The notes below the pieces were generated by a model that was not told where the DNA came from, ran no database searches, and saw only the letters and a list, made by a program, of their open reading frames with translations. Position numbers and translations under genes: made by a program. DNA of 64,000 bases from Macrostomum hystrix (taxonomy: Eukaryota > Animalia > Platyhelminthes): assembly GCA_950097015.1 (NCBI GenBank), contig CATNEN010000034.1:4340001-4404000 (forward strand), in the 5' to 3' direction. The stretch's first letter is position 1. The number at the start of each line of letters is the position of its first letter. Below, one piece after another: positions 360 to 23,500 of this stretch.

Positions 360-3300
360 TCAAGCTTCCTGTTCGTCGCTGAGGCGAGTATTCTCGGCTT
401 CCCGCAGCAGTTCGGCTTCTACCCGCAGATGCCGTCCGCGTCGGGGCCGACCGCCGGTGTCGGCAGCTGGCATCGCCGTCAGCAGCTGCTGCAGTTGCTG
501 TAGGTCAACGCCCGACCTCCAGCCGTCGCGGGGCAGCGGATGGCCCAGTTGGAAAATTCCTCGGAACAGGCCGAGCACCGCTTCCCCGTCACGAGCCAGC
601 AGCTCCTCGACTGAGGCACCGGTGGCGGCTTCCAGTTTTTCAACTGGCACAATGATCAGCTCGGTGTCGGAGGCGGCGTAGGCGGAGGTCGACCGGAAGC
701 CGTGACGGAGCAGCGACTCTGTGCCAAACAGCTCGCCTGCCTCGAGCGTCTCCAACAGCTGACTGGGTCTGTTGGGACCCGGCGTAACCGTGATGGAGAC
801 CCTGCCAGAGTACACTATGAACAGACAGCTCATCTGGTCTGTGCCCTGGTTGCCGGGGAGGATGGAGAAGCTTAGTTAGCACTCCTCGATACACATTATT
901 AGATTATATTGAATTTTTTCCTGCTTGTTGTTACCCCAGAAGGGATTATGTCAGGGCTACCGGGAGTGGAACTAATAGTTTATAGAGGAGATAAACATTT
1001 GAACAAATATTGCACATCATTTGGTGACCATAGACCCGTAGAAGGCGATTCTGCCCATTTCGCTGACTCCTGAGCACACACGAACACAGATTCCGCACAC
1101 AGGTGTGTACATCTGCCCTGACTTTTTCATCGTCAGGCAGTGTACACTCTCACTTGCCTTGGAGGTTGGTGTTCAAGGGTGTAACCTCAAAATAAATGTG
1201 GCCTCGCCGCGGAATCGAATTCAGGGACCCTGGTGCAAGAGGCAAACGCGTTAGACCGCTAACACTCACCTCCTTATTGAGGGGATAGTTTAATGAGTTT
1301 AAAATAAACTTATTGATGAGATTATTATCATAATGAGGGCAATATTAGCCTTATGTGAGGATAATTATCTAAATGAGGAGATTTATTAGATCCGGGATTT
1401 CTGCTTGTTCTCCCTAGAACTGCTTGTCGAATCCAAATCGGCTGCCAACCTCCAGGAAGATGCTCTGGTTCGGTGTCTTTTTATCGACGAAAGCCATCAC
1501 GCTGGCCTGATTGGCCTTCAGCCGTTGCAGCTCGCGTTCGGTGAAGAGGCGGCCGACCTGCGGGTGGCAAATCAGCGCCTCCAGCCCGAAGGCGTAGACT
1601 CGACATGCTGCGGCCGGCGTGGCTTCAGTGGTCGCTGGCGCGATGAGCAGTTGCAGCTCTGTCTCAGTGGCTGCGGGATACCTGCTCGCGATTATAAAAG
1701 ATACAGTCTCAATATATCAACAATTCAGAAAATTTTCAAGAAACCAAAAGTTTTGGGAAACCAAAGTTTCGGGAAATCAAAGTTTCGGGAAATCAAAGTT
1801 TCGGGAAACCAAAGTTTCTGGAAACCAAAGTTTCGGGAAACCAAAGTTTCGGGTAACCAAAGTTTCGGGAAACCCAAAAAGCATGGTCACCTGGTGGCTA
1901 GAAAGTTTTTGAATGCTTCCGGCCTTCTCAGAAAAATATCGCGGAATTCACAACCGATGGCGGTCTCAAGGACGTGTTGGTTCACCAGCTGCAGCTCGGT
2001 ATCATCTTGCAGGGCCCGGGCCTCGTAGCAGCAGACACTGGGTAAGTAGAGCTGCTCGGGGCAGAGCAGGCTGCCCGCAGGCCGGATTTCAGTCCGCTCC
2101 TGTCAATAAAAAAGTTTGTCAGTATTAACAGTGAAAAGATCACGCTATTTTCCCCTGGGGAAAGACCACGGCGCTGCCTACTTCACGACAGCTCCCAAAC
2201 CGAATGACCGATTGATGACCGATGACCGACATGATTACATGATGAAATTTTGTAAGCACGCAAAGTAAGCCTATACTAGGGATTTTTCTGCCAGACACCC
2301 CTACGAGAATTGTTGAATATCTCGATGATTGAGCGGAAAATTTTAGCCCGTTTTCTGGATTTTCATGTCGGTTGGTTTAATATTTAGAGAGATACAGAAA
2401 TGGAGTATTTGAAGTGAAAAAAAAAGAAAAAATCGCCGAGCTCTCGGCCCTACCTGGCAGATGCTGTCGCTGCCAGCTCCGCAACGGGCAGTATGTGACA
2501 CCTCTGCCTCGCCGCTTTGCAAGAAATAAATTATCCTCCGCTTAGACGCTTCCTCAGTGACCATGGTTTCGCCGACGGCAAAGCGCTCTAGACCGCGGCC
2601 ACCCAGGATCACGGCCCGGTGACAGAATCTCAGCGAGCGAAGCTCAGTGGGGGTGAGGATATCATTGCCTAGCGGCATCAGCAGCTGCTGGATCTGGGCT
2701 GTCACCAGCCGGATGACGGCCAGCCCTTTGAATGTCAGCTCGTCGCGTCCGGCCGGCTGACCAGAGCCGCTTACGTGGCCTCCAGTGAGGAGGTCCTCGC
2801 GAGACGGCGGGAACACCTCGTCGCGGAAGGCGCGATCATCGTCGGCGGCGTTCAGCAGGGTGGCGCCGACAAACTGGCGGAAAGTCTCCGAGCGTCGCTT
2901 CATGACAGAGATGAAGCTGCGACAGAGGGCCTCCTCCATGGAGTCAACGTCCAGTGCGACAACAGTGCAGGACTTGTTGGCGTAGGCGGAGCGAGAGCAG
3001 AGGCAGGCGCTCTGCAGCAGAAGCGACTCGAGGCACGCGCAGCCGCCTCGGCTGACAATGCCCAACAGGATGTGAGATCCGTCCGGCCCAACAGGGGCAG
3101 TCTCGCGAAGTTCGCCTTCGAGCAAGACGTACACCTTCTTAGCGTAGTCGGTGCCTTCAGCATACAGGCAGTCGTGCTTCTGCAGCGTTAGAATCTGCGT
3201 CACCATCTGGACTTTGTCGCCGAACAGGCTGTCCAGCTCGGTGGGTCTCAGGAGGCCGCTGAGCTGCGGAGTTCGGCACAAACGAAGCACCGAGCGCCGA

Positions 3301-5065
3301 TGAAGGGCGGGGAAGCTGAGCCTCTGGCGGTCCTGCACAGCGTCAGCGACTGTCGCAGGCTCAGCAGCAGGTTCAGCATCGGCTGCGGTGGCAGCAGCCA
3401 ACACTTCCTCTTCTTGGTTATGTACCAGCTCCGATTGAAGCTCTTCGGTGACTCGGGCCAGAGCTTCGGCATCGTCTGCAAGCTGCGCGTAGATGTGCTG
3501 AGGACACAGGTCGACCTGCAGGCTGATGAGGGTGGACAGCTCCGTCACGGTGGCCGTGTATGGTGAGGCTAGCCGCAGCAGGGCTTGGCAGCAGAGGTTC
3601 TCGCCGGCTCCCCGCCTAGTCGATGCGCCGCGCGAGTCGGACAAGTTCACGCTGCCCTGCAGAATACAGTAAAGCCTGTCTGGCACGGAGCCTTCGTTTA
3701 GCAACACGTAGCCCGCCTCGTAGTCGTACGTCTGCGGGAATGTTTTCAAGGGTTACGGCTGCTTAGCTGCTTAGCATAGGGTCAGGGCCAGAGCGATCTA
3801 ACGTGTTTGCCTCTCGCGCCAAGGTCCCTGAGTTCGATTCCGCGGCGAGGCCACATTCATTTGGGGCGCAGCCGAGGAGAGAAGGCTTGGGGGCTTTTCG
3901 TGAAATTTACGACCTTGATGGCCAACGTCCAAGGCACATTGAGATTGTATACTGCCTGACGATGATAAAGTCAAGGCAGATGTACACACCTGTGTGAGTG
4001 TGAGTGTGTGCCTGCGTACAGTATCTGTGTGCGTGTGTGCTCAGGAGTCAGCGAAATGGGCAGAATCGCCTCATCGCCAAATAATGTGCCTTGCCGACAG
4101 TCCCTCTGCAACGATAGTTTTAAGATAATGGCTGCCTAGCAACAAAATTGGTGCTGGGTTGCAAAGCAACGCTGGGTTCTTTGATCTCACAGAGTGTAGC
4201 TCCTGATTGGTTCACGGACTCGGGGTGGTGGCAAGTGACGGATCGTGTGTACGTGCTCAGGGATCGACTGTAGCCAAATGATACCCCGGTAGCAAAGCCT
4301 CTGCAAATTTTAATTCGACTCTTTGAAAACCTTCAGCGGCTCGTCCCAGCTTTCAGCCAGCGCGTGCATGTCCTTGACTGGCAGGGGCCGGAGGTACTTG
4401 ATGCCGCGCAGGCATTCCAGAAAGGCACCTCGCTGAATCTCGTTGGCAGCAGCTCTCAGGCTGACGAGATCCTTCAGGCCCAGCGAGAATAGCAGAGTGT
4501 CCTCCACTGCCTCCAGAGTGAACTGGCAGGGCTTGCCAATGCAGAGCGAGTCGAAGAACAGTTCAGCGCCGCTCTCCAGCAGCCTGAGCTGGTACTGCTG
4601 AAGGCAGGGCGATGGATGACCGCGCAGCTCGCGCAGCTGGCCCTTGTACACCAGGTGGCACTGTTTGATGACGTCACGCTCCCTGATAAGTTTCATGCCG
4701 GCCGCCAATCTGATTGGCGCAAAGGCATCGATGAAGGCGTGAATGAGCTCGTCCGTGTAGTACAGAGCCGGTCGACGCGACCAGGCGTCCAATAAGAACA
4801 GGCGCTCTTCGCAAGTCTTGTGATGCTTAGGCAGCTGGGCCAGGACATGATTAGGGTCTTGCACAACCTCGTGCGACAGGCTAACGCTGGCTACAACACT
4901 TTCAATGTCAGATATGTGAGACTTGTAGCCTGGGCAGCCGCATTCCTGCCTTTGATTGTACTGTTTATCTTGGGATTCATTGCTGGCGTTCGAGTTGACA
5001 TCCGGTTCTGCGGCCCGCGGACTCAGCAGTACAAAGACACCGTCAGAATCGTTGGACAAGCTCAT
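360..5065 (-). CDS. Protein with five tandem cyclic-nucleotide-binding-like (CAP_ED/cNMP) domains, about 979 aa, 5 exons
   Basis: Exons 5065-4331, 3731-2454, 2099-1891, 1681-1450, 845-360 join in frame at GT-AG sites (e.g. EPLK|TYDYEAG, SIFLE|GTDQMSC). The cNMP beta-roll pattern recurs five times; the best copy is IFLEGTDQMSCLFIVYSGRV...GELFGTESLLRHGFRSTSAYA. The first donor (GTTTTC) is weak and the 3' end is less certain. Confidence 0.8.
1030..1270 (-). mobile_element. tRNA-derived SINE family A copy (intron of cNMP gene)
   Basis: The reverse complement reads TTAGCGGTCTAACGCG...TTCGATTCCGCGGCGAGGCCACA, then the shared body (CTGCCTGACGATG..GTCAGGGCAGATGTACAC, GGAGTCAGCGAAATGGGCAG). It aligns with the copies at 3783, 44780 and 60590. 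Confidence 0.75.
1740..1878. repeat. 16-bp intronic minisatellite GGGAAACCAAAGTTTC
   Basis: About 8 copies. Confidence 0.9.
3783..4085 (+). mobile_element. tRNA-derived SINE family A, most complete copy
   Basis: A-box-like GCCAGAGCGATCTAA and B box GTTCGATTC, followed by a body shared with five other loci in the window. Confidence 0.8.
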
Positions 5066-5276: not shown

Positions 5277-5578
5277 TTCAGCCAGCCAGTCAGTCAGTCA
5301 GTCAGTCAGTCAGTCAGTCAGTCAGTCAGTCAGTCAGTCAGCCAGTCAGTCAGTCAGTCAGTCAGTCAGTCAGTCAGTCAGTCAGTCAGTCAGTCAGTCA
5401 GTCAGTCAGTCAGTCAGTCAGTCAGTCAGTCAGTCAGTCAGTCAGTCAGTCAGTCAGTCAGTCAGTCAGTCAGTCAGTCAGTCAGTCAGTCAGTCAGTCA
5501 GTCAGTCAGTCAGTCAGTCAGTCAGTCAGTCAGTCAGTCAGTCAGTCAGTCAGTCAGTCAGTCAGTCAGTCAGTCAGA
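5277..5578. repeat. (CAGT)n microsatellite
   Basis: About 75 near-perfect copies. Confidence 0.98.
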
Positions 5579-6243
5579 CAGCTGATCGTAGCTTTGTCCC
5601 GTAGAGCTGAAACAGCTGGTAAAGCTGAAGCAGCAGCAGCAACGGCCGGTGTAAACTTAGATTTTGACTGACAGCTAGTCAGGCCCAGACAACAAGGGCT
5701 TCCCGATCCGTACTGTGCAGCTGCAAGTTATGGAAATGCACGCAATGTCAAGAACACGGCTAAGATTTCTCTGTTCCTCCAGTAACTTGCTGTCAATGCC
5801 AATTAAGGGCTAAAATTGGACTAAAGCTTTTAAACTGCGTCATTAAACCCGTTGTAAGAATGTAAGCTTGTAAGAATGACATATAAAAAGTTTTGTCTAC
5901 TTGAAGTAGCATGCGGGCGAATAGCAGTTTCTTAATTTGACAATTTAGTTTTCGGTAATCATGCAGTAAGTTTGCGATTGTGGCTTTCATTCAGCATTAC
6001 AACTGTATTAGCAAATACTCAAAATAATTTTTTCTTACCTGTCAGCCTGTCAGTCTGAGCTCAGTTTGTGTGTACTCAATCAAAATCTTGTGTCATACAG
6101 TTTAAGGGTTGCCGAATGCATTATGCAATAGCTGGCTTGGCATATTGTGAGTGTTCTGACAAAACAAACTATTATGCGACCAATGCTGCTCTAGAAGACA
6201 AATCTTCATTGTGCATGAAGCCTGCAGGGTCAGTCCTCATCCA

Positions 6244-6278
<35 letters not shown>

Positions 6279-7503
6279 CCTATCCAACCCAAACAAATTC
6301 GAGTTTACTTTGGATTGACAGGTGCCAATCAAATGCCTGTCAAAGCCCGCAGCTAAATGCGGGCAGCCCTACCACCCACCCCCATTATTTTCTATTTAGT
6401 CCGACCAGCCCAGAGTAAGTGTTCGAGGATTGTGCACACAGTAAAGTGGTAGCGAGGTCGGAATGTTGACTTTGTGGCTCTCGCACACACACACATGCAT
6501 ACACACTCTGTCTGGCATATATATACACACACAATCTAAGGCTTTGCCTTTGGGAAATCTTCATATCTTTCGGTTTCTTAAGCTACTGTTCGCCAGTTAA
6601 GAAGGAGTTGGTTGAAACAACACTAAGCAAAGTGGTGCATAGTCGACTGGTTTCTCTTGTCTAATAATTTACTGACAGCGGAAATCTGCTTTTTCATTTC
6701 GAGCACAGTGGAGATTATCTAAGCGGTCTGTTAGACTGTTTTAGACAAAATATCTATAGGGATAAAGTTGTCTGCTCTGGTTCCCATGAAATCCTCACCC
6801 AGGCCATTAAGGATAATCCAGGAGAGAGTTGATGAGCAACTCGACCATTAGAACTAATCCAGCTGTAAATAACCGCCATTTTTAGCCTTTTAAGTTATGC
6901 TGAAAAAAACATTGTCAGATAATAACAAAAATCAATCGGATTAACTGAAAATCACCAATCGTCAAAGATCGACAGGAGGCAAAAAGCGGAACCAAACTTG
7001 GCCCCCTGCTAAGCGTTCCCCGCCAAGGGCCAGATCCATTCAGCTGTATTATTAATCGATTATAGAAAACTAATAAAAGCAAAGTTGATTTGATCAATAG
7101 TTTATTAGCGTCAAAGTTGACTGAGGATCAGAGGAGACTGAATGAGGATTTAGAAGAGCTGCGCGTTGAACAGGGGGTACAGTGCGTCGACTAAACAAAC
7201 TGGTACAGTGTCAGTGCAGCTAGGTAGGGTGCACATTTATATATAAATAAACATTTTTATCTTCGGAAAAAGCTGTCTGTTAAATTCCTGTATTTACAGC
7301 ATTCTACAGGCAAACCTGCATAGTGACGAGGTAGACAAACAATTAGAGGGAGAAAATGAGCCATTCATGATTTCCTTGTTGAGGTATTTCGAACGATGAG
7401 AAGCGAAAGCAACTGTTGCCATGCCGTTGCTATGCCACCCGAAATGACTAGCCACCCGAATTTGAGAGGCAGGCAGGGATTAAAGAGCCCTCCCAGTCAG
7501 TAT

Positions 7504-9766
7504 TCAGGTAAAGATTCGGCGTATTCGACACCTGTGCAATTCGATTTGCTGTTCACAGCGCTGGCAAACCACCTTGATGGGATTGTAGCGCATCGCACAA
7601 TTGCACCAATCGGTCTTGTACTGATACTCGACCTGGTGATTCCGATTGCCGCAGCACAGGTGCGCGCATGACCTGTGATCCGTGCTAGCAACGCTGACAT
7701 TGCACTGACGCTCGTCCACGCCGAAATAGCCGGCCACCTCGTTGCGCTGACAGAAGTCCGGCGGTCGGTTGGTGTAAACCAGCAGCTTCTTGCGCACCCG
7801 CTTCGCCCGTCGCTGCCGATCGTCGTGGTAAAACAGTTGCGAAGCCTGACCGTCCGGCGACGAAGATGCCAAAGTGGAAGAAGAAGACGGCGCGAGTTGC
7901 TCAAGGCTAGCCGGCGGGAGGACGTGCTTTGACCTGACAAAGAGTTTCTGTAGATTGCTTTCAATGCGGCGAGAATGGCGGCGGAGGCCTTTGATACAGA
8001 TGCGCTTTGAGCAGGAGCCGGAGATGCCCAGACAGTTGCAGATGTTGATTCTGCTGCGCTTCACCACCTGTGTCATCCGGGGGTGGATGCCATCTTGTCA
8101 AGATTTATGATCACATTTTTGCAGTCATATCGAGCCCCACCCAGCGCCACTCACAATATGACCGGCCCGCCTATTGTGAAAGTTGACCATCTCGATGAAG
8201 TCCATGTCCGGTGCGAAGCCGCGGGAGTCGCGAAAGAACTGCCGGACTCGCTGACTGGCCAGGGCGATATTATCGTCGCAGGTTGGGACATTCAGGTGGC
8301 CGTATTTCTCGCTGATCTTCTCCGGGTTCAGCATCTTCAGCTGCTCTTTGCCCAGGGCGATGCTGCGGCGTGGGCGGGTCCGCTCCTCGCGACGATTCTG
8401 CTTCCGACGCTGTTGCTTACGACGCTGCTGCTGCCGACGCTGTTGCTGATCCAGTCGACTTCCGCGCTGCCTTGGTGTCTGATGACACGGACAGTCGAGA
8501 CCGGAGACGCCGCGACGGCAAGCCATCACCAGCTCCTCGATGGCCTTGCTGACCGATATTGCCCAGACAAATGCGGCCTGCGGATAGCCTGGGATTACAA
8601 CAGGTGGGCAGAATTTATTCAGTCTTTCTGAGCAGAAGTTTGAGTCGATTTTGAGTTAATGCTCACCCGAGTTGAGAAACGGTGCAGCGAATGTGCAATT
8701 CCAGCGCTCATTTCGAAACATTGACTGACAGATCTTGTAGCCGTTTACCAGGCCGATGTGCACGAACTTGTCAGCCAAGCTGGCCTCCCGGCAGTAGGTC
8801 GACTGCGGACTGCCCGGCAGCGCCAGATGCGCGCCGCCTGCGCACATCGCCTCCCGGCTGGTGGTGAGAAAGTGCAGAAATGTCTGCGCGTCCATTCGGT
8901 AATTGTCGCCAACCGCCTGGTCCCGTCTGCCCGAGCCTTTGTAGCCGAAGACGCTGCTGTAAGCGATTGGTGTTGAAGCTGTCCGCTTCTAGACATTCAC
9001 TCAACATCCGCCTTGGATTCGCCCTAGTCTTTGCTAACCAAAGTTTCACTCTGCTCTCGCCCTGCTCTCACCCTGCTCTCACCCTGCTCTCACCCTGCTC
9101 CCACCCTGCTCCCACCCTGCTCCCACCCTGCTCCCACCCTGCTGTCGCCCTGCTGTCGCCCTGCTGTCGCCCTGCTGTCGTCCTGCTGTCGCCCTGCTGT
9201 CGCCCTGCTGTCGCCCTGCTGTCGCCCTGCTGTCGCCCTGCTGTCGCCCTGCTGTCGCCCTGCTGTCGCCCTGCTGTCGCCCTGCTGTCGCCCTGCTGTC
9301 GCCCTGCTGTCGCCCTGCTGTCGCCCTGCTGTCGCCCTGCTGTCGCCCTGCTTTCGCCCTGCTCTCGCCCTGCTGTCGCCCTGCTGTCGCCCTGCTGTCG
9401 CCCTGCTGTCGCCCAGCTGTCGCCCTGCTTTCGCCCTGCTGTCGCCCTGCTGTCGCCCTGCTGTCGCCCTGCTGTCGCCCTGCTCTCACCCTGCTCTCGC
9501 CCTGCTTTCGCCCTGCTGTCGCCCTGCTCTCGACCTGCTCTCGCCATACATTTATGCCTGAGAGTCTAGCCATTCAATCAAGCTTACCCGTCAACATGAG
9601 GGCAGGCCGCCATGAAGGAGCATAGTGCAGCCAGAGCTACCACGAAGGCGCAGTTCACCCGGCGGAGGTGCCAGAAATTCGCGCCAGGCGTCGCCGACAC
9701 TGCTGCGGCAGCAGCCGCCGCCTCCGCCGCGTCTGCATCAGCCGCGTCGGCTTCTTGTGACTTCAT
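7504..9766 (-). CDS. Wnt: Divergent Wnt family ligand, about 488 aa, 4 exons; subfamily not assignable by eye
   Basis: Exons 9766-9588, 8956-8667, 8588-8155, 8067-7504. Wnt motifs: CQSMFRNERWNC, AAFVWAIS, CDDN, HNRRAG, CNCLGISGSC (lipidated Ser kept), PDFC, CAHLCCG. 22 of the 24 canonical Cys are present in register. Exon 1 has a hydrophobic segment. Confidence 0.92.
9045..9545. repeat. 11-bp minisatellite CTGCTGTCGCC in Wnt intron 1
   Basis: About 45 copies with degenerate edges. Confidence 0.95.
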
Positions 9767-10229: not shown

Positions 10230-11215
10230 AACTGGGGAGATTATGGAATTAGAAAGATAATGGAATTAGAAAGATAATGGAATTAGAAAGATTATGGAAT
10301 TAGAAAGATTATGGAATTAGAAAGATTATGGAATTGGGAAGATTATGGAATTGGGAAGATTATGGAATTGGGAAGATAATGGAATTAGAAAGATAATGGA
10401 ACTAGAAAGATTATGGAATTGGGGAGATAATGGAATTAGAAAGATAATGGAACTAGAAAGATTATGGAATTAGAAAGATTATGGAATTAGAAAGATTATG
10501 GAATTAGAAAGATAATGGAATTAGAAAGATTATGGAATTAGAAAGATTATGGAATTGGGGAGATAATGGAATTGGAAAGATTATGGAATTGGGGAGATTA
10601 TGGAATTAGAAAGATAATGGAATTAGAAAGATTATGGAATTGGGGAGATAATGGAATTAGAAAGATAATGGAATTAGAAAGATTATGGAATTGGGGAGAT
10701 AATGGAATTAGAAAGATTATGGAATTGGGAAGATTATGGAATTGGGAAGATAATGGAATTAGAAAGATTATGGAATTGGGAAGATTATGGAATTGGGGAG
10801 ATAATGGAATTAGAAAGATAATGGAATTAGAAAGATAATGGAATTAGAAAGATAATGGAATTAGAAAGATAATGGAATTAGAAAGATAATGGAATTAGAA
10901 AGATAATGGAATTAGAAAGATTATGGAATTGGGGAGATTATGGAATTGTGGAGATAATGGAATTAGAAAGATAATGGAACTAGAAAGATTATGGAATTGG
11001 GGAGATAATGGAATTAGAAAGATAATGGAACTAGAAAGATTATGGAATTAGAAAGATAATGGAATTAGAAAGATTATGGAATTAGAAAGATTATGGAATT
11101 GGGAAGATAATGGAATTGGAAAGATTATGGAATTGGGGAGATTATGGAATTAGAAAGATAATGGAATTAGAAAGATTATGGAATTGGGGAGATAATGGAA
11201 TTAGGAATTGGGAAG
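10230..11215. repeat. 17-bp minisatellite ATTATGGAATTAGAAAG
   Basis: About 58 copies; the same family recurs at 22850-23085. Confidence 0.95.
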
Positions 11216-12699
11216 ATTATTCAATAGACAAGATTTGTGAGTTGGGAAAATTATGGAATTGAAAAGATTGTGGCGCACCGTATTATATATTGTTATATTA
11301 TATTTTGTGGGACGATTTTAGAGTTTGTCCAATTGCCAAGGTGCTGTAGGCCGAGATGGCCAATGGCTGCTCCAGTGCTTGCAATAATTGAAACGCTAGT
11401 CTGTGCCACATGGCATGTCAACAGTGCGTTTAAGTACGCACTGTTCACAATGAAGCATTGTTTCTGCATTGACTCTCTAGGCCATTGTAGTGGTCAGTTC
11501 CTGCCAACTAACGCAGAACTGCCTAGCTATCAATCAAAAACAGCACAGACTTGAGTTGTAGCTCGTAACGTCAATCAAATGTCGTTAGAGGCCTACCTTG
11601 ATAATCTGATATGATTGCCCACTTTTATTTGCCCCTAGGGGGGGGGCAGCTGGGGGTCGGACTAGACTAATTGGCCCCAAAAACTACCAATGGCCAAGCA
11701 GAAAAAAAAATGCAAAAGCAGCAGACCCATTGTGATCCGTTTCTCTCGGTGCTTTCAAAATAGCCAACTCCTTCACAGCAAAAAAATAAGCATTCTGTTC
11801 TGGTCAACGAGGCCTGTTTGCCAATGGACATTGGAGCACTTTAGACAGAGGGAGAACCTTGCTCTCTTCCCGCAGATTTTGCACCAGATTGGAAGCTGCC
11901 GCCGCTGCTGCTGCTGCTGCATCGTGGCTCCTTAACCACTCTCTAGCAAGAGACTGGAATGTTTTACGGTCCGGAAAACACGGCCCCAATGGCCCCTCTC
12001 TCTCCCTATCTTAGATAACCAGCTGTCAATCAGCATCAGCAGCTGTCAAAGCTGAAGGACGGGTGGGTAATACGGTACAAAATCCCATCTCTTCCTAGAG
12101 ATGAAAGCCTTAAGGGGTATTGGCACAGACAGCGAGTGTTTGTGCCAACGGATTTAACGGAGAGAGCTTTCAACGCATCCCCAGTTCATGCTAGTTGATG
12201 GATTGCGTTGAATCACAGGGCGCACGCACACACACACTGATGAATCCTATCACACACATGAATAGGCCAGAGTGTTAGTGCCCAGAGCTTGGTAGATAAG
12301 GCCTGAAAGCTCATCAACAACCTCTTGACTCACGACTCACAGATTAAGCACGCTCAGTTGGCTATCTATCTTATCTGATGGATGAAATTGAAAATTCTCA
12401 GCCAGTGCTTCTCCATCTCATCAATCAAGACCTGGTTTCACACTTGCGCAACTACTCATCTCCACCGCCTTCAGGCGAAGGCCTGCGTTGAGCTGAGCGG
12501 AACCAAGGCATTTCCCTGCTCGAGGCCAATGTGTGATTAGTATATTATTCTCTACACATTCTAAGGAAAAATGAGGCTCATAGACAGATTAGGAAAGAGT
12601 TTGGGACTTTTGGACTCTCTAATAATGAGATTTGGGATTTTCAGATAGTTTTAGGAATTATTTTGGGACGTTTTTGGGAGTTTTTGGTACTTTCGGTCA

Positions 12700-15600
12700 G
12701 TTTAGGGGAGAGTTTAGTGGCTTTCGGTCAGTTTAGGGAAGAGTTTAGTGACTTTCGGACAGTTTAGGGAAGAGTTTAGTGACTTTCGGACAGTTTAGGG
12801 AAGAGTTTAGTGACTTTCGGTCAGTTTAGGGAAGAGTTTAGTGACTTTCGGTCAGTTTAGGGAAGAGTTTAGTGACTTTCGGACAGTTTAGGGAAGAGTT
12901 TAGTGACTTTCGGTCAGTTTAGGGAAGAGTTTAGTGACTTTCGGACAGTTTAGGGAAGAGTTTAGTGACTTTCGGACAGTTTAGGGAAGAGTTTAGTGGC
13001 TTTCGGTCAGTTTAGGGAAGAGTTTAGTGACTTTCGGTCAGTTTAGGGAAGAGTTTAGTGGCTTTCGGACAGTTTAGGGAAGAGTTTAGTGACTTTCGGT
13101 CAGTTTAGGGAAGAGTTTAGTGACTTTCGGTCAGTTTAGGGAAGAGTTTAGTGACTTTCGGATAGTTTAGGGAAGAGTTTAGTGACTTTCGGTCAGTTTA
13201 GGGAAGAGTTTAGTGACTTTTGGTCAGTTTAGGGAAGAGTTTAGTGACTTTCGGACAGTTTAGGGAAGAGTTTAGTGGCTTTCGGTCAGTTTAGGGAAGA
13301 GTTTAGTGACTTTCGGTCAGTTTAGGGAAGAGTTTAGTGACTTTCGGTCAGTTTAGGGAAGAGTTTAGTGACTTTCGGTCAGTTTAGGGAAGAGTTTAGT
13401 GGCTTTCGGTCAGTTTAGGGAAGAGTTTAGTGACTTTCGGACAGTTTAGGGAAGAGTTTAGTGGCTTTCGATCAGTTTAGGGAAGAGTTTAGTGACTTTC
13501 GGACAGTTTAAGGAAGAGTTTAGTGGCTTTCGGTCAGTTTAGGGAAGAGTTTAGTGACTTTCGGACAGTTTAGGGAAGAGTTTAGTGACTTTCGGACAGT
13601 TTAGGGAAGAGTTTAGTGACTTTCGGTCAGTTTAGGGAAGAGTTTAGTGGCTTTCGGTCAGTTTAGGGAAGAGTTTAGTGACTTTCGGTCAGTTTAGGGA
13701 AGAGTTTAGTGACTTTCGGACAGTTTAGGGAAGAGTTTAGTGGCTTTCGGTCAGTTTAGGGAAGAGTTTAGTGACTTTCGGACAGTTTAGGGAAGAGTTT
13801 AGTGGCTTTCGGTCAGTTTAGGGAAGAGTTTAGTGACTTTCGGTCAGTTTAGGGAAGAGTTTAGTGGCTTTCGGTCAGTTTAGGGAAGAGTTTAGTGACT
13901 TTCGGTCAGTTTAGGGAAGAGTTTAGTGACTTTCGGTCAGTTTAGGGAAGAGTTTAGTGACTTTCGGATAGTTTAGGGAAGAGTTTAGTGGCTTTCGGTC
14001 AGTTTAGGGAAGAGTTTAGTGGCTTTCGGTCAGTTTAGGGAAGAGTTTAGTGACTTTCGGACAGTTTAGGGAAGAGTTTAGTGGCTTTCGGTCAGTTTAG
14101 GGAAGAGTTTAGTGACTTTCGGTCAGTTTAGGGAAGAGTTTAGTGACTTTCGGTCAGTTTAGGGAAGAGTTTAGTGACTTTCGGTCAGTTTAGGGAAGAG
14201 TTTAGTGGCTTTCGGTCAGTTTAGGGAAGAGTTTAGTGACTTTCGGACAGTTTAGGGAAGAGTTTAGTGGCTTTCGATCAGTTTAGGGAAGAGTTTAGTG
14301 ACTTTCGGACAGTTTAAGGAAGAGTTTAGTGGCTTTCGGTCAGTTTAGGGAAGAGTTTAGTGACTTTCGGACAGTTTAGGGAAGAGTTTAGTGACTTTCG
14401 GACAGTTTAGGGAAGAGTTTAGTGACTTTCGGTCAGTTTAGGGAAGAGTTTAGTGACTTTCGGTCAGTTTAGGGAAGAGTTTAGTGACTTTCGGTCAGTT
14501 TAGGGAAGAGTTTAGTGGCTTTCGGTAAGTTTAGGGAAGAGTTTAGTGACTTTCGGTAAGTTTAGGGAAGAGTTTAGTGACTTTCGGTCAGTTTAGGGAA
14601 GAGTTTAGTGACTTTCGGACAGTTTAGGGAAGAGTTTAGTGGCTTTCGGACAGTTTAGGGAAGAGTTTAGTGACTTTCGGTCAGTTTAGGGAAGAGTTTA
14701 GTGACTTTCGGTCAGTTTAGGGAAGAGTTTAGTGACTTTCGGTCAGTTTAGGGAAGAGTTTAGTGACTTTCGGTCAGTTTAGGGAAGAGTTTAGTGGCTT
14801 TCGGTCAGTTTAGGGAAGAGTTTAGTGGCTTTCGGTCAGTTTAGGGAAGAGTTTAGTGGCTTTCGGACAGTTTAGGGAAGAGTTTAGTGACTTTCGGATA
14901 GTTTAGGGAAGAGTTTAGTGGCTTTCGGTCAGTTTAGGGAAGAGTTTAGTGGCTTTCGGACAGTTTAGGGAAGAGTTTAGTGACTTTCGGATAGTTTAGG
15001 GAAGAGTTTAGTGGCTTTCGGTCAGTTTAGGGAAGAGTTTAGTGACTTTCGGTCAGTTTAGGGAAGAGTTTAGTGGCCTTCGGTCAGTTTAGGGAAGAGT
15101 TTAGTGGCTTTCGGTCAGTTTAGGGAAGAGTTTAGTGGCTTTCGGTCAGTTTAGGGAAGAGTTTAGTGACTTTCGGTCAGTTTAGGGAAGAGTTTAGTGG
15201 CCTTCGGTCAGTTTAGGGAAGAGTTTAGTGGCCTTCGGTCAGTTTAGGGAAGAGTTTAGTGGCTTTCGGACAGTTTAGGGAAGAGTTTAGTGGCTTTCGG
15301 TCAGTTTAGGGAAGAGTTTAGTGACTTTCGGTCAGTTTAGGGAAGAGTTTAGTGACTTTCGGTCAGTTTAGGGAAGAGTTTAGTGGCTTTCGGTCAGTTT
15401 AGGGAAGAGTTTAGTGACTTTCGGTCAGTTTAGGGAAGAGTTTAGTGACTTTCGGACAGTTTAGGGAAGAGTTTAGTGACTTTCGGACAGTTTAGGGAAG
15501 AGTTTAGTGACTTTCGGTCAGTTTAGGGAAGAGTTTAGTGACTTTCGGACAGTTTAGGGAAGAGTTTAGTGGCTTTCGGTCAGTTTAAGGAAGAGTTTAG

Positions 15601-18600
15601 TGACTTTCGGATAGTTTAGGGAAGAGTTTAGTGGCTTTCGGTCAGTTTAGGGAAGAGTTTAGTGGCTTTCGGATAGTTTAGGGAAGAGTTTAGTGACTTT
15701 CGGATAGTTTAGGGAAGAGTTTAGTGGCTTTCGGACAGTTTAGGGAAGAGTTTAGTGACTTTCGGATAGTTTAGGGAAGAGTTTAGTGGCTTTCGGTCAG
15801 TTTAGGGAAGAGTTTAGTGGCTTTCGGACAGTTTAGGGAAGAGTTTAGTGACTTTCGGACAGTTTAGGGAAGAGTTTAGTGACTTTCGGTCAGTTTAGGG
15901 AAGAGTTTAGTGGCTTTCGGACAGTTTAGGGAAGAGTTTAGTGACTTTCGGACAGTTTAGGGAAGAGTTTAGTGGCTTTCGGTCAGTTTAGGGAAGAGTT
16001 TAGTGGCTTTCGGTCAGTTTAGGGAAGAGTTTAGTGACTTTCGGACAGTTTAGGGAAGAGTTTAGTGACTTTCGGTCAGTTTAGGGAAGAGTTTAGTGGC
16101 TTTCGGTCAGTTTAGGGAAGAGTTTAGTGACTTTCGGATAGTTTAGGGAAGAGTTTAGTGGCTTTCGGACAGTTTAGGGAAGAGTTTAGTGACTTTCGGA
16201 CAGTTTAGGGAAGAGTTTAGGGACTTTCGGACAGTTTAGGGAAGAGTTTAGTGGCTTTCGGTCAGTTTAGGGAAGAGTTTAGTGGCTTTCGGACAGTTTA
16301 GGGAAGAGTTTAGTGACTTTCGGACAGTTTAGGGAAAAGTTTAGTGACTTTCGGACAGTTTAGGGAAGAGTTTAGTGACTTTCGGTCAGTTTAGGGAAGA
16401 GTTTAGTGGCTTTCGGACAGTTTAGGGAAGAGTTTAGTGGCTTTCGGACAGTTTAGGGAAGAGTTTAGTGACTTTCGGTCAGTTTAGGGAAGAGTTTAGT
16501 GACTTTCGGACAGTTTAGGGAAGAGTTTAGTGACTTTCAGTCAGTTTAGGGAAGAGTTTAGTGGCTTTCGGACAGTTTAGGGAAGAGTTTAGTGACTTTC
16601 GGACAGTTTAGGGAAGAGTTTAGTGACTTTCGGACAGTTTAGGGAAGAGTTTAGTGACTTTCGGTCAGTTTAGGGAAGAGTTTAGTGACTTTCGGACAGT
16701 TTAGGGAAGAGTTTAGTGACTTTCGGTCAGTTTAGGGAAGAGTTTAGTGACTTTCGGTCAGTTTAGGGAAGAGTTTAGTGGCTTTCGGACAGTTTAGGGA
16801 AGAGTTTAGTGACTTTCGGACAGTTTAGGGAAGAGTTTAGTGACTTTCGGACAGTTTAGGGAAGAGTTTAGTGACTTTCGGACAGTTTAGGGAAGAGTTT
16901 AGTGACTTTCGGACAGTTTAGGGAAGAGTTTAGTGACTTTCGGTCAGTTTAGGGAAGAGTTTAGTGGCTTTCGGACAGTTTAGGGAAGAGTTTAGTGGCT
17001 TTCGGACAGTTTAGGGAAGAGTTTAGTGACTTTCGGTCAGTTTAGGGAAGAGTTTAGTGGCTTTCGGACAGTTTAGGGAAGAGTTTAGTGACTTTCAGTC
17101 AGTTTAGGGAAGAGTTTAGTGGCTTTCGGACAGTTTAGGGAAGAGTTTAGTGACTTTCGGACAGTTTAGGGAAGAGTTTAGTGACTTTCGGACAGTTTAG
17201 GGAAGAGTTTAGTGGCTTTCGGACAGTTTAGGGAAGAGTTTAGTGACTTTCGGACAGTTTAGGGAAGAGTTTAGTGGCTTTCGGACAGTTTAGGGAAGAG
17301 TTTAGTGGCTTTCGGACAGTTTAGGGAAGAGTTTAGTGACTTTCGGTCAGTTTAGGGAAGAGTTTAGTGACTTTCGGTCAGTTTAGGGAAGAGTTTAGTG
17401 ACTTTCGGTCAGTTTAGGGAAGAGTTTAGTGGCTTTCGGTCAGTTTAGGGAAGAGTTTAGTGACTTTCGGTCAGTTTAGGGAAGAGTTTAGTGACTTTCG
17501 GACAGTTTAGGGAAGAGTTTAGTGACTTTCGGACAGTTTAGGGAAGAGTTTAGTGACTTTCGGTCAGTTTAGGGAAGAGTTTAGTGACTTTCGGACAGTT
17601 TAGGGAAGAGTTTAGTGGCTTTCGGTCAGTTTAAGGAAGAGTTTAGTGACTTTCGGATAGTTTAGGGAAGAGTTTAGTGGCTTTCGGTCAGTTTAGGGAA
17701 GAGTTTAGTGGCTTTCGGATAGTTTAGGGAAGAGTTTAGTGACTTTCGGATAGTTTAGGGAAGAGTTTAGTGGCTTTCGGACAGTTTAGGGAAGAGTTTA
17801 GTGACTTTCGGATAGTTTAGGGAAGAGTTTAGTGGCTTTCGGTCAGTTTAGGGAAGAGTTTAGTGGCTTTCGGACAGTTTAGGGAAGAGTTTAGTGACTT
17901 TCGGACAGTTTAGGGAAGAGTTTAGTGACTTTCGGTCAGTTTAGGGAAGAGTTTAGTGGCTTTCGGACAGTTTAGGGAAGAGTTTAGTGACTTTCGGACA
18001 GTTTAGGGAAGAGTTTAGTGGCTTTCGGTCAGTTTAGGGAAGAGTTTAGTGGCTTTCGGTCAGTTTAGGGAAGAGTTTAGTGACTTTCGGACAGTTTAGG
18101 GAAGAGTTTAGTGACTTTCGGTCAGTTTAGGGAAGAGTTTAGTGGCTTTCGGTCAGTTTAGGGAAGAGTTTAGTGACTTTCGGATAGTTTAGGGAAGAGT
18201 TTAGTGGCTTTCGGACAGTTTAGGGAAGAGTTTAGTGACTTTCGGACAGTTTAGGGAAGAGTTTAGGGACTTTCGGACAGTTTAGGGAAGAGTTTAGTGG
18301 CTTTCGGTCAGTTTAGGGAAGAGTTTAGTGGCTTTCGGACAGTTTAGGGAAGAGTTTAGTGACTTTCGGACAGTTTAGGGAAAAGTTTAGTGACTTTCGG
18401 ACAGTTTAGGGAAGAGTTTAGTGACTTTCGGTCAGTTTAGGGAAGAGTTTAGTGGCTTTCGGACAGTTTAGGGAAGAGTTTAGTGGCTTTCGGACAGTTT
18501 AGGGAAGAGTTTAGTGACTTTCGGTCAGTTTAGGGAAGAGTTTAGTGACTTTCGGACAGTTTAGGGAAGAGTTTAGTGACTTTCAGTCAGTTTAGGGAAG

Positions 18601-19560
18601 AGTTTAGTGGCTTTCGGACAGTTTAGGGAAGAGTTTAGTGACTTTCGGACAGTTTAGGGAAGAGTTTAGTGACTTTCGGACAGTTTAGGGAAGAGTTTAG
18701 TGACTTTCGGTCAGTTTAGGGAAGAGTTTAGTGACTTTCGGACAGTTTAGGGAAGAGTTTAGTGACTTTCGGTCAGTTTAGGGAAGAGTTTAGTGACTTT
18801 CGGTCAGTTTAGGGAAGAGTTTAGTGGCTTTCGGACAGTTTAGGGAAGAGTTTAGTGACTTTCGGACAGTTTAGGGAAGAGTTTAGTGACTTTCGGACAG
18901 TTTAGGGAAGAGTTTAGTGACTTTCGGACAGTTTAGGGAAGAGTTTAGTGACTTTCGGACAGTTTAGGGAAGAGTTTAGTGACTTTCGGTCAGTTTAGGG
19001 AAGAGTTTAGTGGCTTTCGGACAGTTTAGGGAAGAGTTTAGTGGCTTTCGGACAGTTTAGGGAAGAGTTTAGTGACTTTCGGTCAGTTTAGGGAAGAGTT
19101 TAGTGGCTTTCGGACAGTTTAGGGAAGAGTTTAGTGACTTTCAGTCAGTTTAGGGAAGAGTTTAGTGGCTTTCGGACAGTTTAGGGAAGAGTTTAGTGAC
19201 TTTCGGACAGTTTAGGGAAGAGTTTAGTGACTTTCGGACAGTTTAGGGAAGAGTTTAGTGACTTTCGGTCAGTTTAGGGAAGAGTTTAGTGACTTTCGGA
19301 CAGTTTAGGGAAGAGTTTAGTGACTTTCGGACAGTTTAGGGAAGAGTTTAGTGACTTTCGGACAGTTTAGGGAAGAGTTTAGTGACTTTCGGACAGTTTA
19401 GGGAAGAGTTTAGTGACTTTCGGACAGTTTAGGGAAGAGTTTAGTGGCTTTCGGTCAGTTTAGGGAAGAGTTTAGTGACTTTCGGACAGTTTAGGGAAGA
19501 GTTTAGTGACTTTCGGACAGTTTAGGGGAGAGTTTAGTGGCTTTCGAACAGTTTAGGGGA
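12700..19560. repeat. 31-bp satellite GTTTAGGGAAGAGTTTAGTGACTTTCGGWCA with higher-order structure
   Basis: About 220 copies with no spacers. Rare variants recur at 806, 558 and 2046 bp offsets. Confidence 0.98.
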
Positions 19561-19925
19561 GTGTTTAATGTTTTTTTAAGCACTTTTTGGGACTTTTGGG
19601 CAGTTTAAGGAAGAACTGTGGGCTTACAGGCGAAAACATCTGAATTAGTTTTTTGCGCATTGTCGATTGTATTTCAGTTTAGCGGTGAAGTCCCATTTAG
19701 GAAATGAAGAGTGTGACTGGCACAGTGATACGCAAACGCATTCTTGATTCCCAGCTTGCAGATCGTAGTCGATTTGCATATCAATACCTTGTGGTGCTAC
19801 TAGTGCAGTTTGAGTGGGTGCGAATCTTACACTCTGTGCGCCAGCCGAGAGACTAACGAAATTCTTGAAAGAAAACACGCTATTTTTTTCTTCCGATTTT
19901 GTTTTAAATACACCCGATTACACCC

Positions 19926-20245
19926 CATTCAGTCCAGTCCAGTCCACTCCACTCCACTCCGCTCCACTCCACTCCACTCTACTCTACTCCACTCCACTCC
20001 AGTCCACTCCACTCCACTCCACTCCACTCCACTCCACTCCACTCCACTCCACTCCACTCCACTCCAGTCCACTCCACTCCACTCCACTCCACTCCACTCC
20101 ACTCTACTCCAGTCCACTCTAATCCACTCCGCTCCACTCCACTCTACTCCACTCTACTCCATTCACACTGCACTCCAGTCCACTCCACTCTACTCCATTC
20201 ACACTGCACTCCAGTCCACTCCACTCCACTCCATTCACACTGCAC
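19926..20245. repeat. (CCACT)n pentanucleotide repeat
   Basis: Direct tandem array. Confidence 0.95.
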
Positions 20246-20568
20246 TCGAAAAGCGTATCAGAGTTGAATAAAAGTTTTTCTAGAACCACTTAGTAAAGCG
20301 GTTTTATCTTCAAACGCTACTTAGTTAGAACAGTAGTATTTTGCACACGTTTCTAAACTGATCGGCCAACACTGATCAAACATATACTCAACTGAGCCTG
20401 TGTTTGACAACAGTCTATTTACCTTCTGTTTCTGCCAAGAAAGTTATAAAGAAGCAATGCTTGATTGATTCCTTTTAATTCCTCTGCGAGCAGAAAGTTG
20501 AGAGTCAGTGAGATCACTAGCAGTGGCACCTGCTCTGTTAAGCTTATCAGGAAACTACAGAAGTCGAA

Positions 20569-23500
20569 ATGCTGCTTTTATTTGCTAGCCTCCTTGTACT
20601 GGCGCATTGTAACGAGGTGAGTTGGAACTTGGGGAAACCAGTCAATAAATCTTAGGCTGAATATTCAACTCCAGTTATCCACGCAAAACAGCCCACACCT
20701 ATCTTCTTATGAGTGAATATCCTATTTTCGATTATCCCAAACTGAATATCCCATTTTTAATTATCCCGCACCGAATATCGAAGTTTCAATTATTCCGCAC
20801 CGTATATCCCATTTTCAATTATCCCGCACCGAATATCCCAGTTTCAATTATCCCGCACCGAATATCCCAGTTTCAATTATCCCGCACCGAATATCCCATT
20901 TTCAATTATCCCGCACCGAATATCCCAGTTTCAATTATCCCGCACCGAATATCCCAGTTTCAATTATCCCGCACCGAATATCCCAGTTTCAATTATCCCG
21001 CACCGAATATCCCAGTTTCAATTATCCCGCACCGAATATCCCATTTTCAATTATCCCGCACCGAATGTCCCATTTTCAATTATCCCGCACCGAATATCCC
21101 AGTTTCAATTATCCCGCACCGAATATCCCAGTTTCAATTATCCCGCACCGAATATCCCAGTTTCAATTATCCCGCACCGAATATCCCATTTTCAATTATC
21201 CCGCACCGAATATCCCAATTTCAATTATCCCGCACCGAATATCGAAGTTTCAATTATCCCGCACCGAATATCCCAGTTTCAATTATCCCGCACCGAATAT
21301 CCCAGTTTCAATTATCCCGCACCGAATATCCCATTTTCAATTATCCCGCACCGAATATCCCAATTTCAATTATCCCGCACCGAATATGGAAGTTTCAATT
21401 ATCCCGCACCGAATATCCCAGTTTCAATTATCCCGCACCGAATATCCCAGTTTCAATTATCCCGCACCGAATATCCCAGTTTCAATTATCCCGCACCGAA
21501 TATCCCAGTTTCAATTATCCCGCACCGAATATCCCAGTTTCAATTATCCCGCACCGAATATCCCATTTTCAATTATCCCGCACCGAATATCCCAGTTTCA
21601 ATTATCCCGCACCGAATATCCCAGTTTCAATTATCCCGCACCGAATATCCCAGTTTCAATTATCCCGCACCGAATATCCCAGTTTCAATTATCCCGCACC
21701 GAATATCCCATTTTCAATTATCCCGCACCGAATGTCCCATTTTCAATTATCCCGCACCGAATATCCCAGTTTCAATTATCCCGCACCGAATATCCCAGTT
21801 TCAATTATCCCGCACCGAATATCCCAGTTTCAATTATCCCGCACCGAATATCGAAGTTTCAATTATCCCGCACCGAATATCCCAATTTCAATTATCCCGC
21901 ACCGAATATCGAAGTTTCAATTATCCCGCACCGAATATCCCAGTTTCAATTATCCCGCACCGAATATCCCAGTTTCAATTATCCCGCACCGAATATCCCA
22001 TTTTCAATTATCCCGCACCGAATATCCCAGTTTCAATTATCCCGCACCGAATATCCCAGTTTCAATTATCCCGCACCGAATATCCCAGTTTCAATTATCC
22101 CGCACCGAATATCCCAGTTTCAATTATCCCGCACCGAATATCCCAGTTTCAATTATCCCGCACCGAATATCCCAGTTTCAATTATCCCGCACCGAATATC
22201 CCAGTTTCAATTATCCCGCACCGAATATCCCAGTTTCAATTATCCTGCACCGAATATCCCATTTTCAATTATCCCGCACTGAATATCCGAGTTTCAATTA
22301 TCCCGCACCGAATATCCTAGTTTCAATTATCCCGCACCGAATATCCCAGTTTCAATTATCCCGCACCGAATATCCCAGTTTCAATTATCCCGCACCGAAT
22401 ATCCCAGTTTCAATTATCCCGCACCGAATATCCCAGTTTCAATTATCCCGCACCGAATATCCCAGTTTCAATTATCCCGCACCGAATATCCCATTTTCAA
22501 TTATCCCGCACTGAATATCCGAGTTTCAATTATCCCGCACCGAATATCCTAGTTTCAATTATCCCGCACCGAATATCCCAGTTTCAATTATCCCGCACCG
22601 AATATCCCAGTTTCAATCCGAAATCAATATCGCGATTCAAAATTCGACACATTAGTTATGCTAAGCCGAATCCCACGATGAAATATTTCTCACTAAACAT
22701 TCTAAGCCAAATGTCCTATGCCTGTAAATCCATATTGCATGCAGCACATCTGGGTGGCCCAAATTGACGGAGGCAGTCAGGTGGCTCAGTGGGTCGCCGA
22801 CGCCCACGGACTAATTAACGACGGGCAGGTGAGTTGAGCGCTGAAATCGTGGAATCGGAAAGAATATGGAATTGGGAAGAATATGGAATTGGGAAGAATA
22901 TGGAATTGGGAAGATTGTGAAACTGGGAAGATTGTGGAATTCGGAAGATTGTGGATTTTGGGAAGATTGTGGAATTGGGAAGATTGTGAAACTGGGAAGA
23001 TTGTGGAATTTGGAAGATTGTGGAATTGGGGAGAATATGGAATTGGGAAGATTGAAAAATTAGGAAGATTTTGGAATTGGGAGTAATATAAAATTTATTT
23101 GGAGTTTAGCAGTAGCGGTTTCACTCTACTTTCAGTAGTATGGTAACGGACATGAATGCTAATTTCAGATAATCTTATCAGAAATTATCTCTTGATTACT
23201 CCAGAATTCCGAATTTCATAATTATTTCAGATACCTTATCTAAATAACAAGTACGTGTTCCGCCTGCCCAGTCTTCGAATCACCAACCAGAGCTCGGCCT
23301 TGAGTTTACTCGAAGCTGCCATAGTCCGGGCGCGGCAGGGCGAAGTCAACAACAGTTTGTTGCAGCATCCGGAAGTGGCATGGGTGTCTTATCAGACGGG
23401 GCGCAAGAGAACGAAAAGAGACATATTGGAGTTTAATGAGGTCAGCGTCTGTGACTCTGGGATCTATAATTATAATTGCTGGAGGGCTGTTGGCAAGGGC

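Follow-up and report, generated by a model that had tools for sequence, protein, structure and literature searches.

Can a Wnt remain a working ligand when the tip of its index finger has been replaced? The question is raised by a minus-strand gene in a stretch of 64,000 nucleotides (nt) of the flatworm Macrostomum hystrix (GenBank assembly GCA_950097015.1, contig CATNEN010000034.1, positions 4,340,001 to 4,404,000; hereafter the window, in whose coordinates all positions are given). The index-finger tip is usually treated as universal for Frizzled recognition, and both the Macrostomum-only clade to which the window Wnt belongs and all flatworm Wnt11 proteins examined manage without its tryptophan and its vicinal disulfide. 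With moderate confidence, we read the locus as an intact, expressed gene for a fast-evolving Wnt ligand, from a clade known to date in Macrostomum alone, which would be a working ligand with remodelled partner contacts.

Index finger, W-loop and thumb

The gene has four coding exons, running from an ATG at 9766 to a stop codon at 7504-7506, and its product has 488 amino acids. An earlier note on this DNA, made from the letters alone, had called it a Wnt, and this identity was borne out by Pfam, PDB and Foldseek. Exon 4 matched the Pfam family wnt (PF00110) with an E value of 6.2e-26 (92 bits) and exon 2 with 3.2e-5, both above the cut-off of 20.3 bits. The PDB sequence matches of exon 4 were Wnt3a, Wnt3, Wnt5a, Wnt7a and Wnt8 chains and no others, and all nine Foldseek matches with E ≤ 0.001 were Wnt chains as well.

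Of the 24 columns in which six aligned canonical Wnts conserve Cys, the window Wnt has Cys in 22, and the vicinal pair of the index finger accounts for the only two absent. The earlier note had reported exactly this, with the other 22 Cys in register. Since the pair bonds to itself in canonical Wnts, the loss of both members leaves no unpaired Cys. In place of F-x-W-C-C with its vicinal disulfide, the tip reads A-M-R-Y-N-P-I. Site 2 on the Frizzled cysteine-rich domain (CRD) involves C315, F317, W319, the C320-C321 tandem disulfide and V323 of XWnt8 (PMC10695916, PMC6040091). At the aligned positions of the window Wnt, C315 is Cys, F317 is Met, W319 is Tyr and V323 is Val, while C320-C321 is replaced by Asn-Pro-Ile, which makes the tip one residue longer. 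Hydrophobic residues (Met, Tyr, Ile, Val) thus persist at the compared site-2 positions. The note had the Trp and Phe as gone; both are indeed replaced, and the change is put more exactly as Phe to Met, Trp to Tyr and Cys-Cys to Asn-Pro-Ile. It had placed the hairpin at 7557-7605; the hairpin is confirmed and spans 7555-7605, the noted range falling short by two bases at the last Cys codon.

The other two fingers are changed as well, apart from the lipid site. The W-loop motif W-x-W-G-G-C-x-D-N is replaced by L-N-V-P-T-C-D-D-N at 8269-8295, as had been noted, so that the equivalent of Wnt3a W150 is gone. At the base of the thumb, the equivalent of Wnt3a W218 (the Trp of K-T-C-W) is Ile. The acylation hairpin CNCLGISGSCSKRIC is kept (CNCLGISGSC, of the form C-x-C-x-G-x-S-G-x-C), with its Ser at 8020-8022; here too the note was right, and serine acylation of the window Wnt is predicted from this motif. 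In the structure of Wnt3a with its carrier, Wntless is gripped by K215 and W218 of hairpin 1, by W333 and the C334-C335 disulfide of hairpin 2 and by W150 of the W-loop (PMC8316347).

The structure of exon 4 alone (the C-terminal 187 residues) was predicted with AlphaFold2 from a 64-row alignment. The mean predicted local distance difference test score (pLDDT) was 83.7, and blocks of 10 residues in the range 141-180 had mean values of 88-98. A long index-finger hairpin was predicted, with strands at residues 144-160 and 165-180 and a turn at 161-164 consisting of Y-N-P-I. In the model the tip is rebuilt rather than deleted, with an Asn-Pro turn in place of the disulfide-braced one. The earlier picture of a tip simply removed does not agree with this confident hairpin, with the hydrophobic residues at site-2 positions, or with the conservation of the new motif among Macrostomum paralogues.

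For transcript evidence, Logan contigs of four public runs from three studies were placed on 7300-9040; at contig level, rare variants could remain. Together they cover 7300-8957. The contigs of runs X2, X3 and X4 span exons 2 to 4 fully, and their coding letters are identical to the genome, hairpin included. Run X9 contributed one contig of 237 nt over the joint of exons 3 and 4, again without a differing coding letter. The sole difference between contigs and genome lies at 7363, in the 3' untranslated region. The contigs skip 87 bases (8065-8151, cut movable by 3) and 78 bases (8588-8665, cut movable by 1), which correspond to the predicted introns 3 and 2, and a loose contig end at 8957 reads the end of the exon 1 sequence. 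With no letter changed in the hairpin and every joint where the gene model puts it, all three introns are confirmed, and the hairpin state is real and transcribed. The gene is transcribed and spliced, and the rebuilt hairpin is no assembly artefact; the earlier note had allowed that reads with WCC might expose one, and the contigs show no WCC at the hairpin. In run X2, a contig of 136 nt (8560-8695) is unspliced across intron 2 and occurs alongside a spliced one of 58 nt; it may derive from pre-mRNA or from DNA carry-over.

Relatives in Macrostomum and the spread of the pair loss

An exhaustive HMMER search of 1.84 billion cluster representatives with exon 4 as the query returned 338 Wnts. Only two matches had an E value below 1e-30, both annotated 'Protein Wnt' of Macrostomum lignano, and the window protein itself was absent from both protein collections searched. 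The M. lignano relatives form two groups. Group A (UniRef A0A267GD83 and A0A267FP07; P0151, P0152) is about 51% identical to the window Wnt and group B (A0A267GXP9 and A0A267ETA4; P0002, P0153) about 42%. The tips of two relatives read CNCSMLYNPIRVHCERC and CRCQMKSNPIRVDCQQC and contain the motif M-x-x-N-P-I-K/R-V as in the window Wnt; their W-loops are KPAIPTCDDN and GISLPSCDDN, and the acylation hairpin is kept. Both groups have in common with the window Wnt the tip motif, the loss of W-x-W-G-G-C, the Ile for the K-T-C-W Trp, the set of 22 Cys and all three intron positions; their inserts differ. The group A gene (L001 12987-13763) has an apparent extra intron in the linker, judged from tblastn piece boundaries only, which is found neither in the window gene nor in group B. 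Neither M. lignano locus was found to share a neighbour gene with the window over a distance of 10 kb, and orthology by synteny was dropped for this reason.

Across the three Macrostomum lineages, 32.5% of the aligned columns are invariant. Five of the 10 tip residues (M, N, P, I, V) do not vary, compared with a mean of 3.2 per window of 10 residues, and a sixth position shows the conservative exchange K/R; judged from these alignments, the tip appears neither relaxed nor exceptionally conserved. The M. lignano duplicates differ from each other by 8 residues or none, and distances between the window Wnt and M. lignano are saturated. A word-based search with P0001 was swamped by low-complexity words and returned M. 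lignano models only, several of them frameshifted. When the GC-rich matches P0059, P0097 and P0087 were checked for a canonical M. lignano Wnt11, none was identified.

Among the matches with a recognisable hairpin, 22 lack the vicinal pair; the sample is biased toward the query, and such counts are not frequencies. The pair-less flatworm Wnts come from Schistosoma, Calicophoron, Cichlidogyrus and Dendrocoelum, and a search with the Dendrocoelum protein identified it as the orthologue of Smed-Wnt11-2. Outside the flatworms, the pair is absent in Sycon WntM, a Halisarca Wnt, Mnemiopsis Wnt6, a Pleurobrachia Wnt, Hofstenia wnt-1 and an ostracod Wnt. Every recovered flatworm Wnt11 with a readable hairpin lacks it, namely planarian wnt11-1 and wnt11-2 and the proteins of trematodes, cestodes (including the 'Wnt-11' of E. 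granulosus) and the monogenean Cichlidogyrus. Their tip is typically C-N-C-R-M-x-x-G-F-K-V-x-C, while arthropod Wnt11 and mollusc Wnt4 retain Y/F-H-W-C-C. A loss unique to the window Wnt is ruled out by the flatworm Wnt11, sponge, ctenophore, acoel and ostracod cases, and on these alignments the loss is a lineage trait rather than a one-off. The earlier description of the tip as almost invariant is therefore too strong, given its absence from every flatworm Wnt11 examined and from several sponge, ctenophore, acoel and crustacean Wnts. Among the results that would refute its claim, the note had listed a state already known for a whole characterised subfamily, and the present finding is such a result: the state is present throughout flatworm Wnt11. 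The literature search, incomplete in its coverage, found no paper remarking on the cysteine loss there.

In planarians, RNA interference (RNAi) against wnt11-2 gives 'tailless' regenerates and RNAi against wnt11-1 shorter tails, and both genes were proposed to act non-canonically (Sureda-Gomez et al., PMC4661829). By these patterning phenotypes, Wnts without the vicinal pair behave as working ligands in flatworms. The Macrostomum clade and flatworm Wnt11, the latter including planarian posterior Wnts with RNAi phenotypes, make up a natural series in which one can ask what part of site 2 is indispensable in a working Wnt and how specificity between ligand and receptor evolves.

Flatworm Wnt11 proteins (Smed-wnt11-1, Smed-wnt11-2 and those of Dendrocoelum, trematodes, cestodes and a monogenean) resemble the window Wnt in the absence of the same two Cys columns, the retained acylation Ser and K-V after the turn. 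The window tip agrees with their form C-x-C-x-M-x-x-N/G-F-K-V-x-C, but with one extra residue. They differ in having Phe or Tyr for the K-T-C-W Trp, where the window Wnt has Ile, and in mostly keeping the W-loop Trp as F-Y-W-A-G-C (Y-W-A/S-G-C), where it has V-P-T-C. In an alignment of 84 rows, loss of the pair accompanies loss of the K-T-C-W Trp: both are lost in 27 proteins, both kept in 51 and mixed in 6, and each changes about 8 times on the tree; these are raw counts only, because just three independent pairs of changes sit on supported branches.

The M. lignano proteins group with the window Wnt at 100/100 support, and the stem of their joint clade measures about 3.6 substitutions per site. 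In four trees, this clade attaches to the other Wnts without support; the phylogeny across flatworms that the earlier note had proposed as a check thus confirmed the Macrostomum clade and left its wider placement unsupported. Flatworm Wnt11 falls in a 100/100 clade which also holds arthropod Wnt11, with the Macrostomum clade outside. When Macrostomum and flatworm Wnt11 were constrained to group, the tree was 3.7 log-likelihood units better than a quick free tree with the tip columns in (approximately unbiased (AU) test, p 0.6), and 3.1 units worse than a careful free tree with the tip columns removed (AU p 0.386). Kinship with flatworm Wnt11 gains no support from these tests, nor do they reject it, and there is a risk of long-branch attraction. 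Among the 84 Wnts, Met in the F317 column and Asn in the C320 column are confined to flatworm Wnt11 and the Macrostomum clade. On moderate evidence from the alignment, we lean towards common descent of the rebuilt tip, from an ancestor resembling flatworm Wnt11, over convergence.

The Wnt repertoires of M. cliftonense and M. hystrix are catalogued in a preprint (Gasiorowski et al. 2026, bioRxiv 10.64898/2026.07.29.741434). It lists two Wnt1, multiple Wnt5 and Wnt11, multiple macrostomorph-specific 'WntM' and expanded Frizzled and sFRP families; neither the cysteines nor the finger tip is mentioned in it. Like the window clade, WntM is described there as Macrostomum-only and as joining no bilaterian Wnt family, a match at the level of description. 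The window clade is probably this WntM, or else the preprint's Macrostomum Wnt11 copies. A lineage-specific Macrostomum Wnt group is already known from databases and the preprint, and the window adds one more expressed member from a further genome. The finger anatomy of the group appears undescribed (no paper was found), but is common to the well-studied flatworm Wnt11.

Gene structure and surroundings

The joined exons give an intact reading frame of 1467 nt (488 codons), and the three introns of 631, 78 and 87 nt are each bounded by GT..AG. All features are on the minus strand and are given in the order of transcription.

9588-9766, minus strand: coding exon 1, from the ATG at 9766; long N-terminal region, then a hydrophobic signal-like segment; ends in phase 2; based on sequence and translation, and the loose contig end at 8957 reads the exon's last bases.
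8957-9587, minus strand: intron 1, 631 nt, GT..AG; contains a minisatellite (9051-9545) in which an 11-nt unit is repeated 45 times.
8667-8956, minus strand: coding exon 2, first part of the N-terminal domain up to R-W-N-C-T-F; Pfam wnt match (E 3e-5); covered by contigs.
8589-8666, minus strand: intron 2, 78 nt, phase 1, within F-L-N-S|G|Y-P-Q; 78-base skip in three runs; M. lignano intron at the same position.
8155-8588, minus strand: coding exon 3, N-terminal domain helices, Gln/Arg-rich insert, W-loop equivalent and N-F-H-N-R-R-A-G.
8269-8295, minus strand: W-loop equivalent L-N-V-P-T-C-D-D-N, replacing W-x-W-G-G-C-x-D-N.
8068-8154, minus strand: intron 3, 87 nt, phase 0, between A-G-H-I and V-V-K-R; 87-base skip in all four runs; M. 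lignano intron at the same position.
7504-8067, minus strand: coding exon 4, thumb hairpin, linker, C-terminal cystine-knot domain and stop codon 7504-7506; based on Pfam, PDB, AlphaFold2 and Foldseek.
7993-8040, minus strand: thumb hairpin C-N-C-L-G-I-S-G-S-C-S-K-R-I-C-I (CNCLGISGSCSKRICI), with the acylation Ser at 8020-8022 and Ile for the K-T-C-W Trp.
7555-7605, minus strand: index-finger tip C-N-C-A-M-R-Y-N-P-I-K-V-V-C-Q-R-C (CNCAMRYNPIKVVCQRC), with a predicted 4-residue turn Y-N-P-I.
6940-7503, minus strand: 3' untranslated region; end approximate, judged from the reach of contigs past 7300 (337-361 letters below 7300 in X2, X3 and X4).

By translation, about 37 N-terminal residues precede the signal-like hydrophobic segment, and M. 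lignano group A is similar in this respect. The minisatellite of intron 1 (9051-9545, unit CTGCTGTCGCC) gives long spurious open reading frames (ORFs) on both strands. Exon 3 carries at 8360-8470 a Gln/Arg-rich insert, QQQRRQQQRRKQQRRKQNRREERTRPRR, between C-x-C and the W-loop, a place where neodermatan Wnt11 also has an insert. The linker in exon 4 (7800-7930) is Ser-rich and then multibasic (RQRRAKRVRKK) ahead of the C-terminal domain. The basic clusters may be convertase sites.

Upstream of the Wnt gene, a 17-nt unit is tandemly repeated about 57 times (10238-11204), and a related 17-nt array lies at 22849-23082. The repeat translates in one frame as repeated MELERLWNWGDNGIRKI and is probably non-coding. 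Further upstream, a 31-nt satellite of about 222 copies with 95% matches fills nearly 7 kb (12689-19567) and causes the strong GC skew of 0.46-0.48 at 12-20 kb. It is followed by a (TCCAC) array of about 62 copies (19933-20247) and a 29-nt tandem array of 66 copies (20715-22617). The downstream neighbour gene, at 2346-5065 on the minus strand, includes at least two ORF pieces with similarity to PF00027, the cyclic-nucleotide-binding domain (E 8e-18 and 0.003). Between it and the Wnt gene lies a (TCAG) microsatellite of 76 copies (5278-5581).

Readings of the locus and known Wnts

In the reading we favour, the Wnt fold, 22 of 24 canonical Cys and the serine hairpin, the putative site of acylation by Porcupine, are retained, and the three protein fingers with which canonical Wnts hold Wntless and the Frizzled CRD have been rebuilt, with W-x-W-G-G-C changed to L-N-V-P-T-C, the K-T-C-W Trp to Ile and F-x-W-C-C to M-x-Y-N-P-I. 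The ligand would be lipidated, secreted and active, and its lipid would still fit a CRD groove. The remodelled, hydrophobic and conserved site-2 surface would then change its partner preference, the partner probably being a paralogue from the expanded Frizzled or sFRP families of Macrostomum. An altered receptor preference of the window Wnt is possible.

A further reading, which we regard as possible but rather doubtful, is a 'private' Wnt. Here, the lipid anchor would be kept and all three Trp-bearing contacts to Wntless and the Frizzled CRD replaced, in co-evolution with a dedicated Frizzled or sFRP paralogue or a non-Frizzled receptor. If true, ligand and receptor would form a pair insulated from the animal's other Wnts.

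The rebuilt fingers might instead serve Ror, Ryk, PTK7 or another receptor outside the Frizzled family. This would suit a protein in which all compared Frizzled and Wntless protein contacts are changed while the fold is kept, and the proposed β-catenin-independent action of planarian wnt11-1 and wnt11-2 (PMC4661829) points the same way. The kept acylation hairpin, however, points to a lipid-binding CRD groove, though a Ror or sFRP CRD could supply one, and we consider this reading unlikely.

Slightly less credit is given to a natural antagonist or decoy, whose lipid thumb would fill the Frizzled CRD groove while the grip is left incomplete, or co-receptors are not recruited, owing to the altered index finger and W-loop, so that other Wnts are blocked. 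The replacement of three Trp contacts could be read in this way, and the Wnt3a mutant W333A is secreted normally while its signalling in the TOPFlash assay is nearly abolished (PMC8316347). But the new tip is conserved and still hydrophobic, and flatworm Wnt11 proteins with the same loss act as positive patterning ligands in RNAi (PMC4661829). The earlier proposal that the protein binds by the thumb only and is hence possibly an antagonist does not follow, since planarian wnt11-1 and wnt11-2 have the loss-of-patterning phenotypes of active ligands.

A decaying duplicate on its way to a pseudogene, with relaxed constraint on the tip, is very improbable. The very long stem branch of about 3.6 substitutions per site and the low-complexity inserts would be in keeping with decay, but against it stand an intact reading frame, the full set of 22 remaining Cys, conserved introns, spliced transcripts and a new tip motif common to lineages only 42-51% identical. 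An outright pseudogene is ruled out by frame, Cys, splicing and conservation within the clade. An assembly or sequencing error at the hairpin is of negligible probability, as contigs from four runs and three studies have no differing coding letter and the M. lignano genes, which were sequenced independently, show the motif too.

Several points weigh against the reading as a remodelled working ligand. The clade is known from genes, transcripts and predicted structure alone, and its RNA support is at the level of contigs, not raw reads. The stretch ahead of the hydrophobic segment is unusually long, and secretion is an assumption. Conservation of the tip is only moderately above the protein average, with about 30% of all 10-residue windows at least as conserved, and at the W319/W333 position Tyr gives way to Ser in one M. 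lignano group. By analogy with Wnt3a W333A (PMC8316347), the changed tip could also weaken canonical Frizzled engagement.

Compared with solved complexes, namely XWnt8 with the Fz8 CRD (4F0A), Wnt3 with the Fz8 CRD (6AHY) and Wnt3a with Wntless (7DRT), the remodelled ligand has the same fold, cystine framework, thumb hairpin (acylated in canonical Wnts) and long index-finger hairpin. Unlike it, the canonical Wnts carry the W-loop Trp, the thumb-base Trp and the Trp-Cys-Cys of the tip. Among the weak Foldseek matches of the exon 4 model was 4KRR, which we take to be the N-terminal domain of Drosophila WntD. WntD is a divergent Wnt with a specialised role, which is not known to carry the acylated Ser or the lipid and has kept the index finger. 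It also departs from a near-universal Wnt feature, but in the opposite arrangement to the window Wnt.

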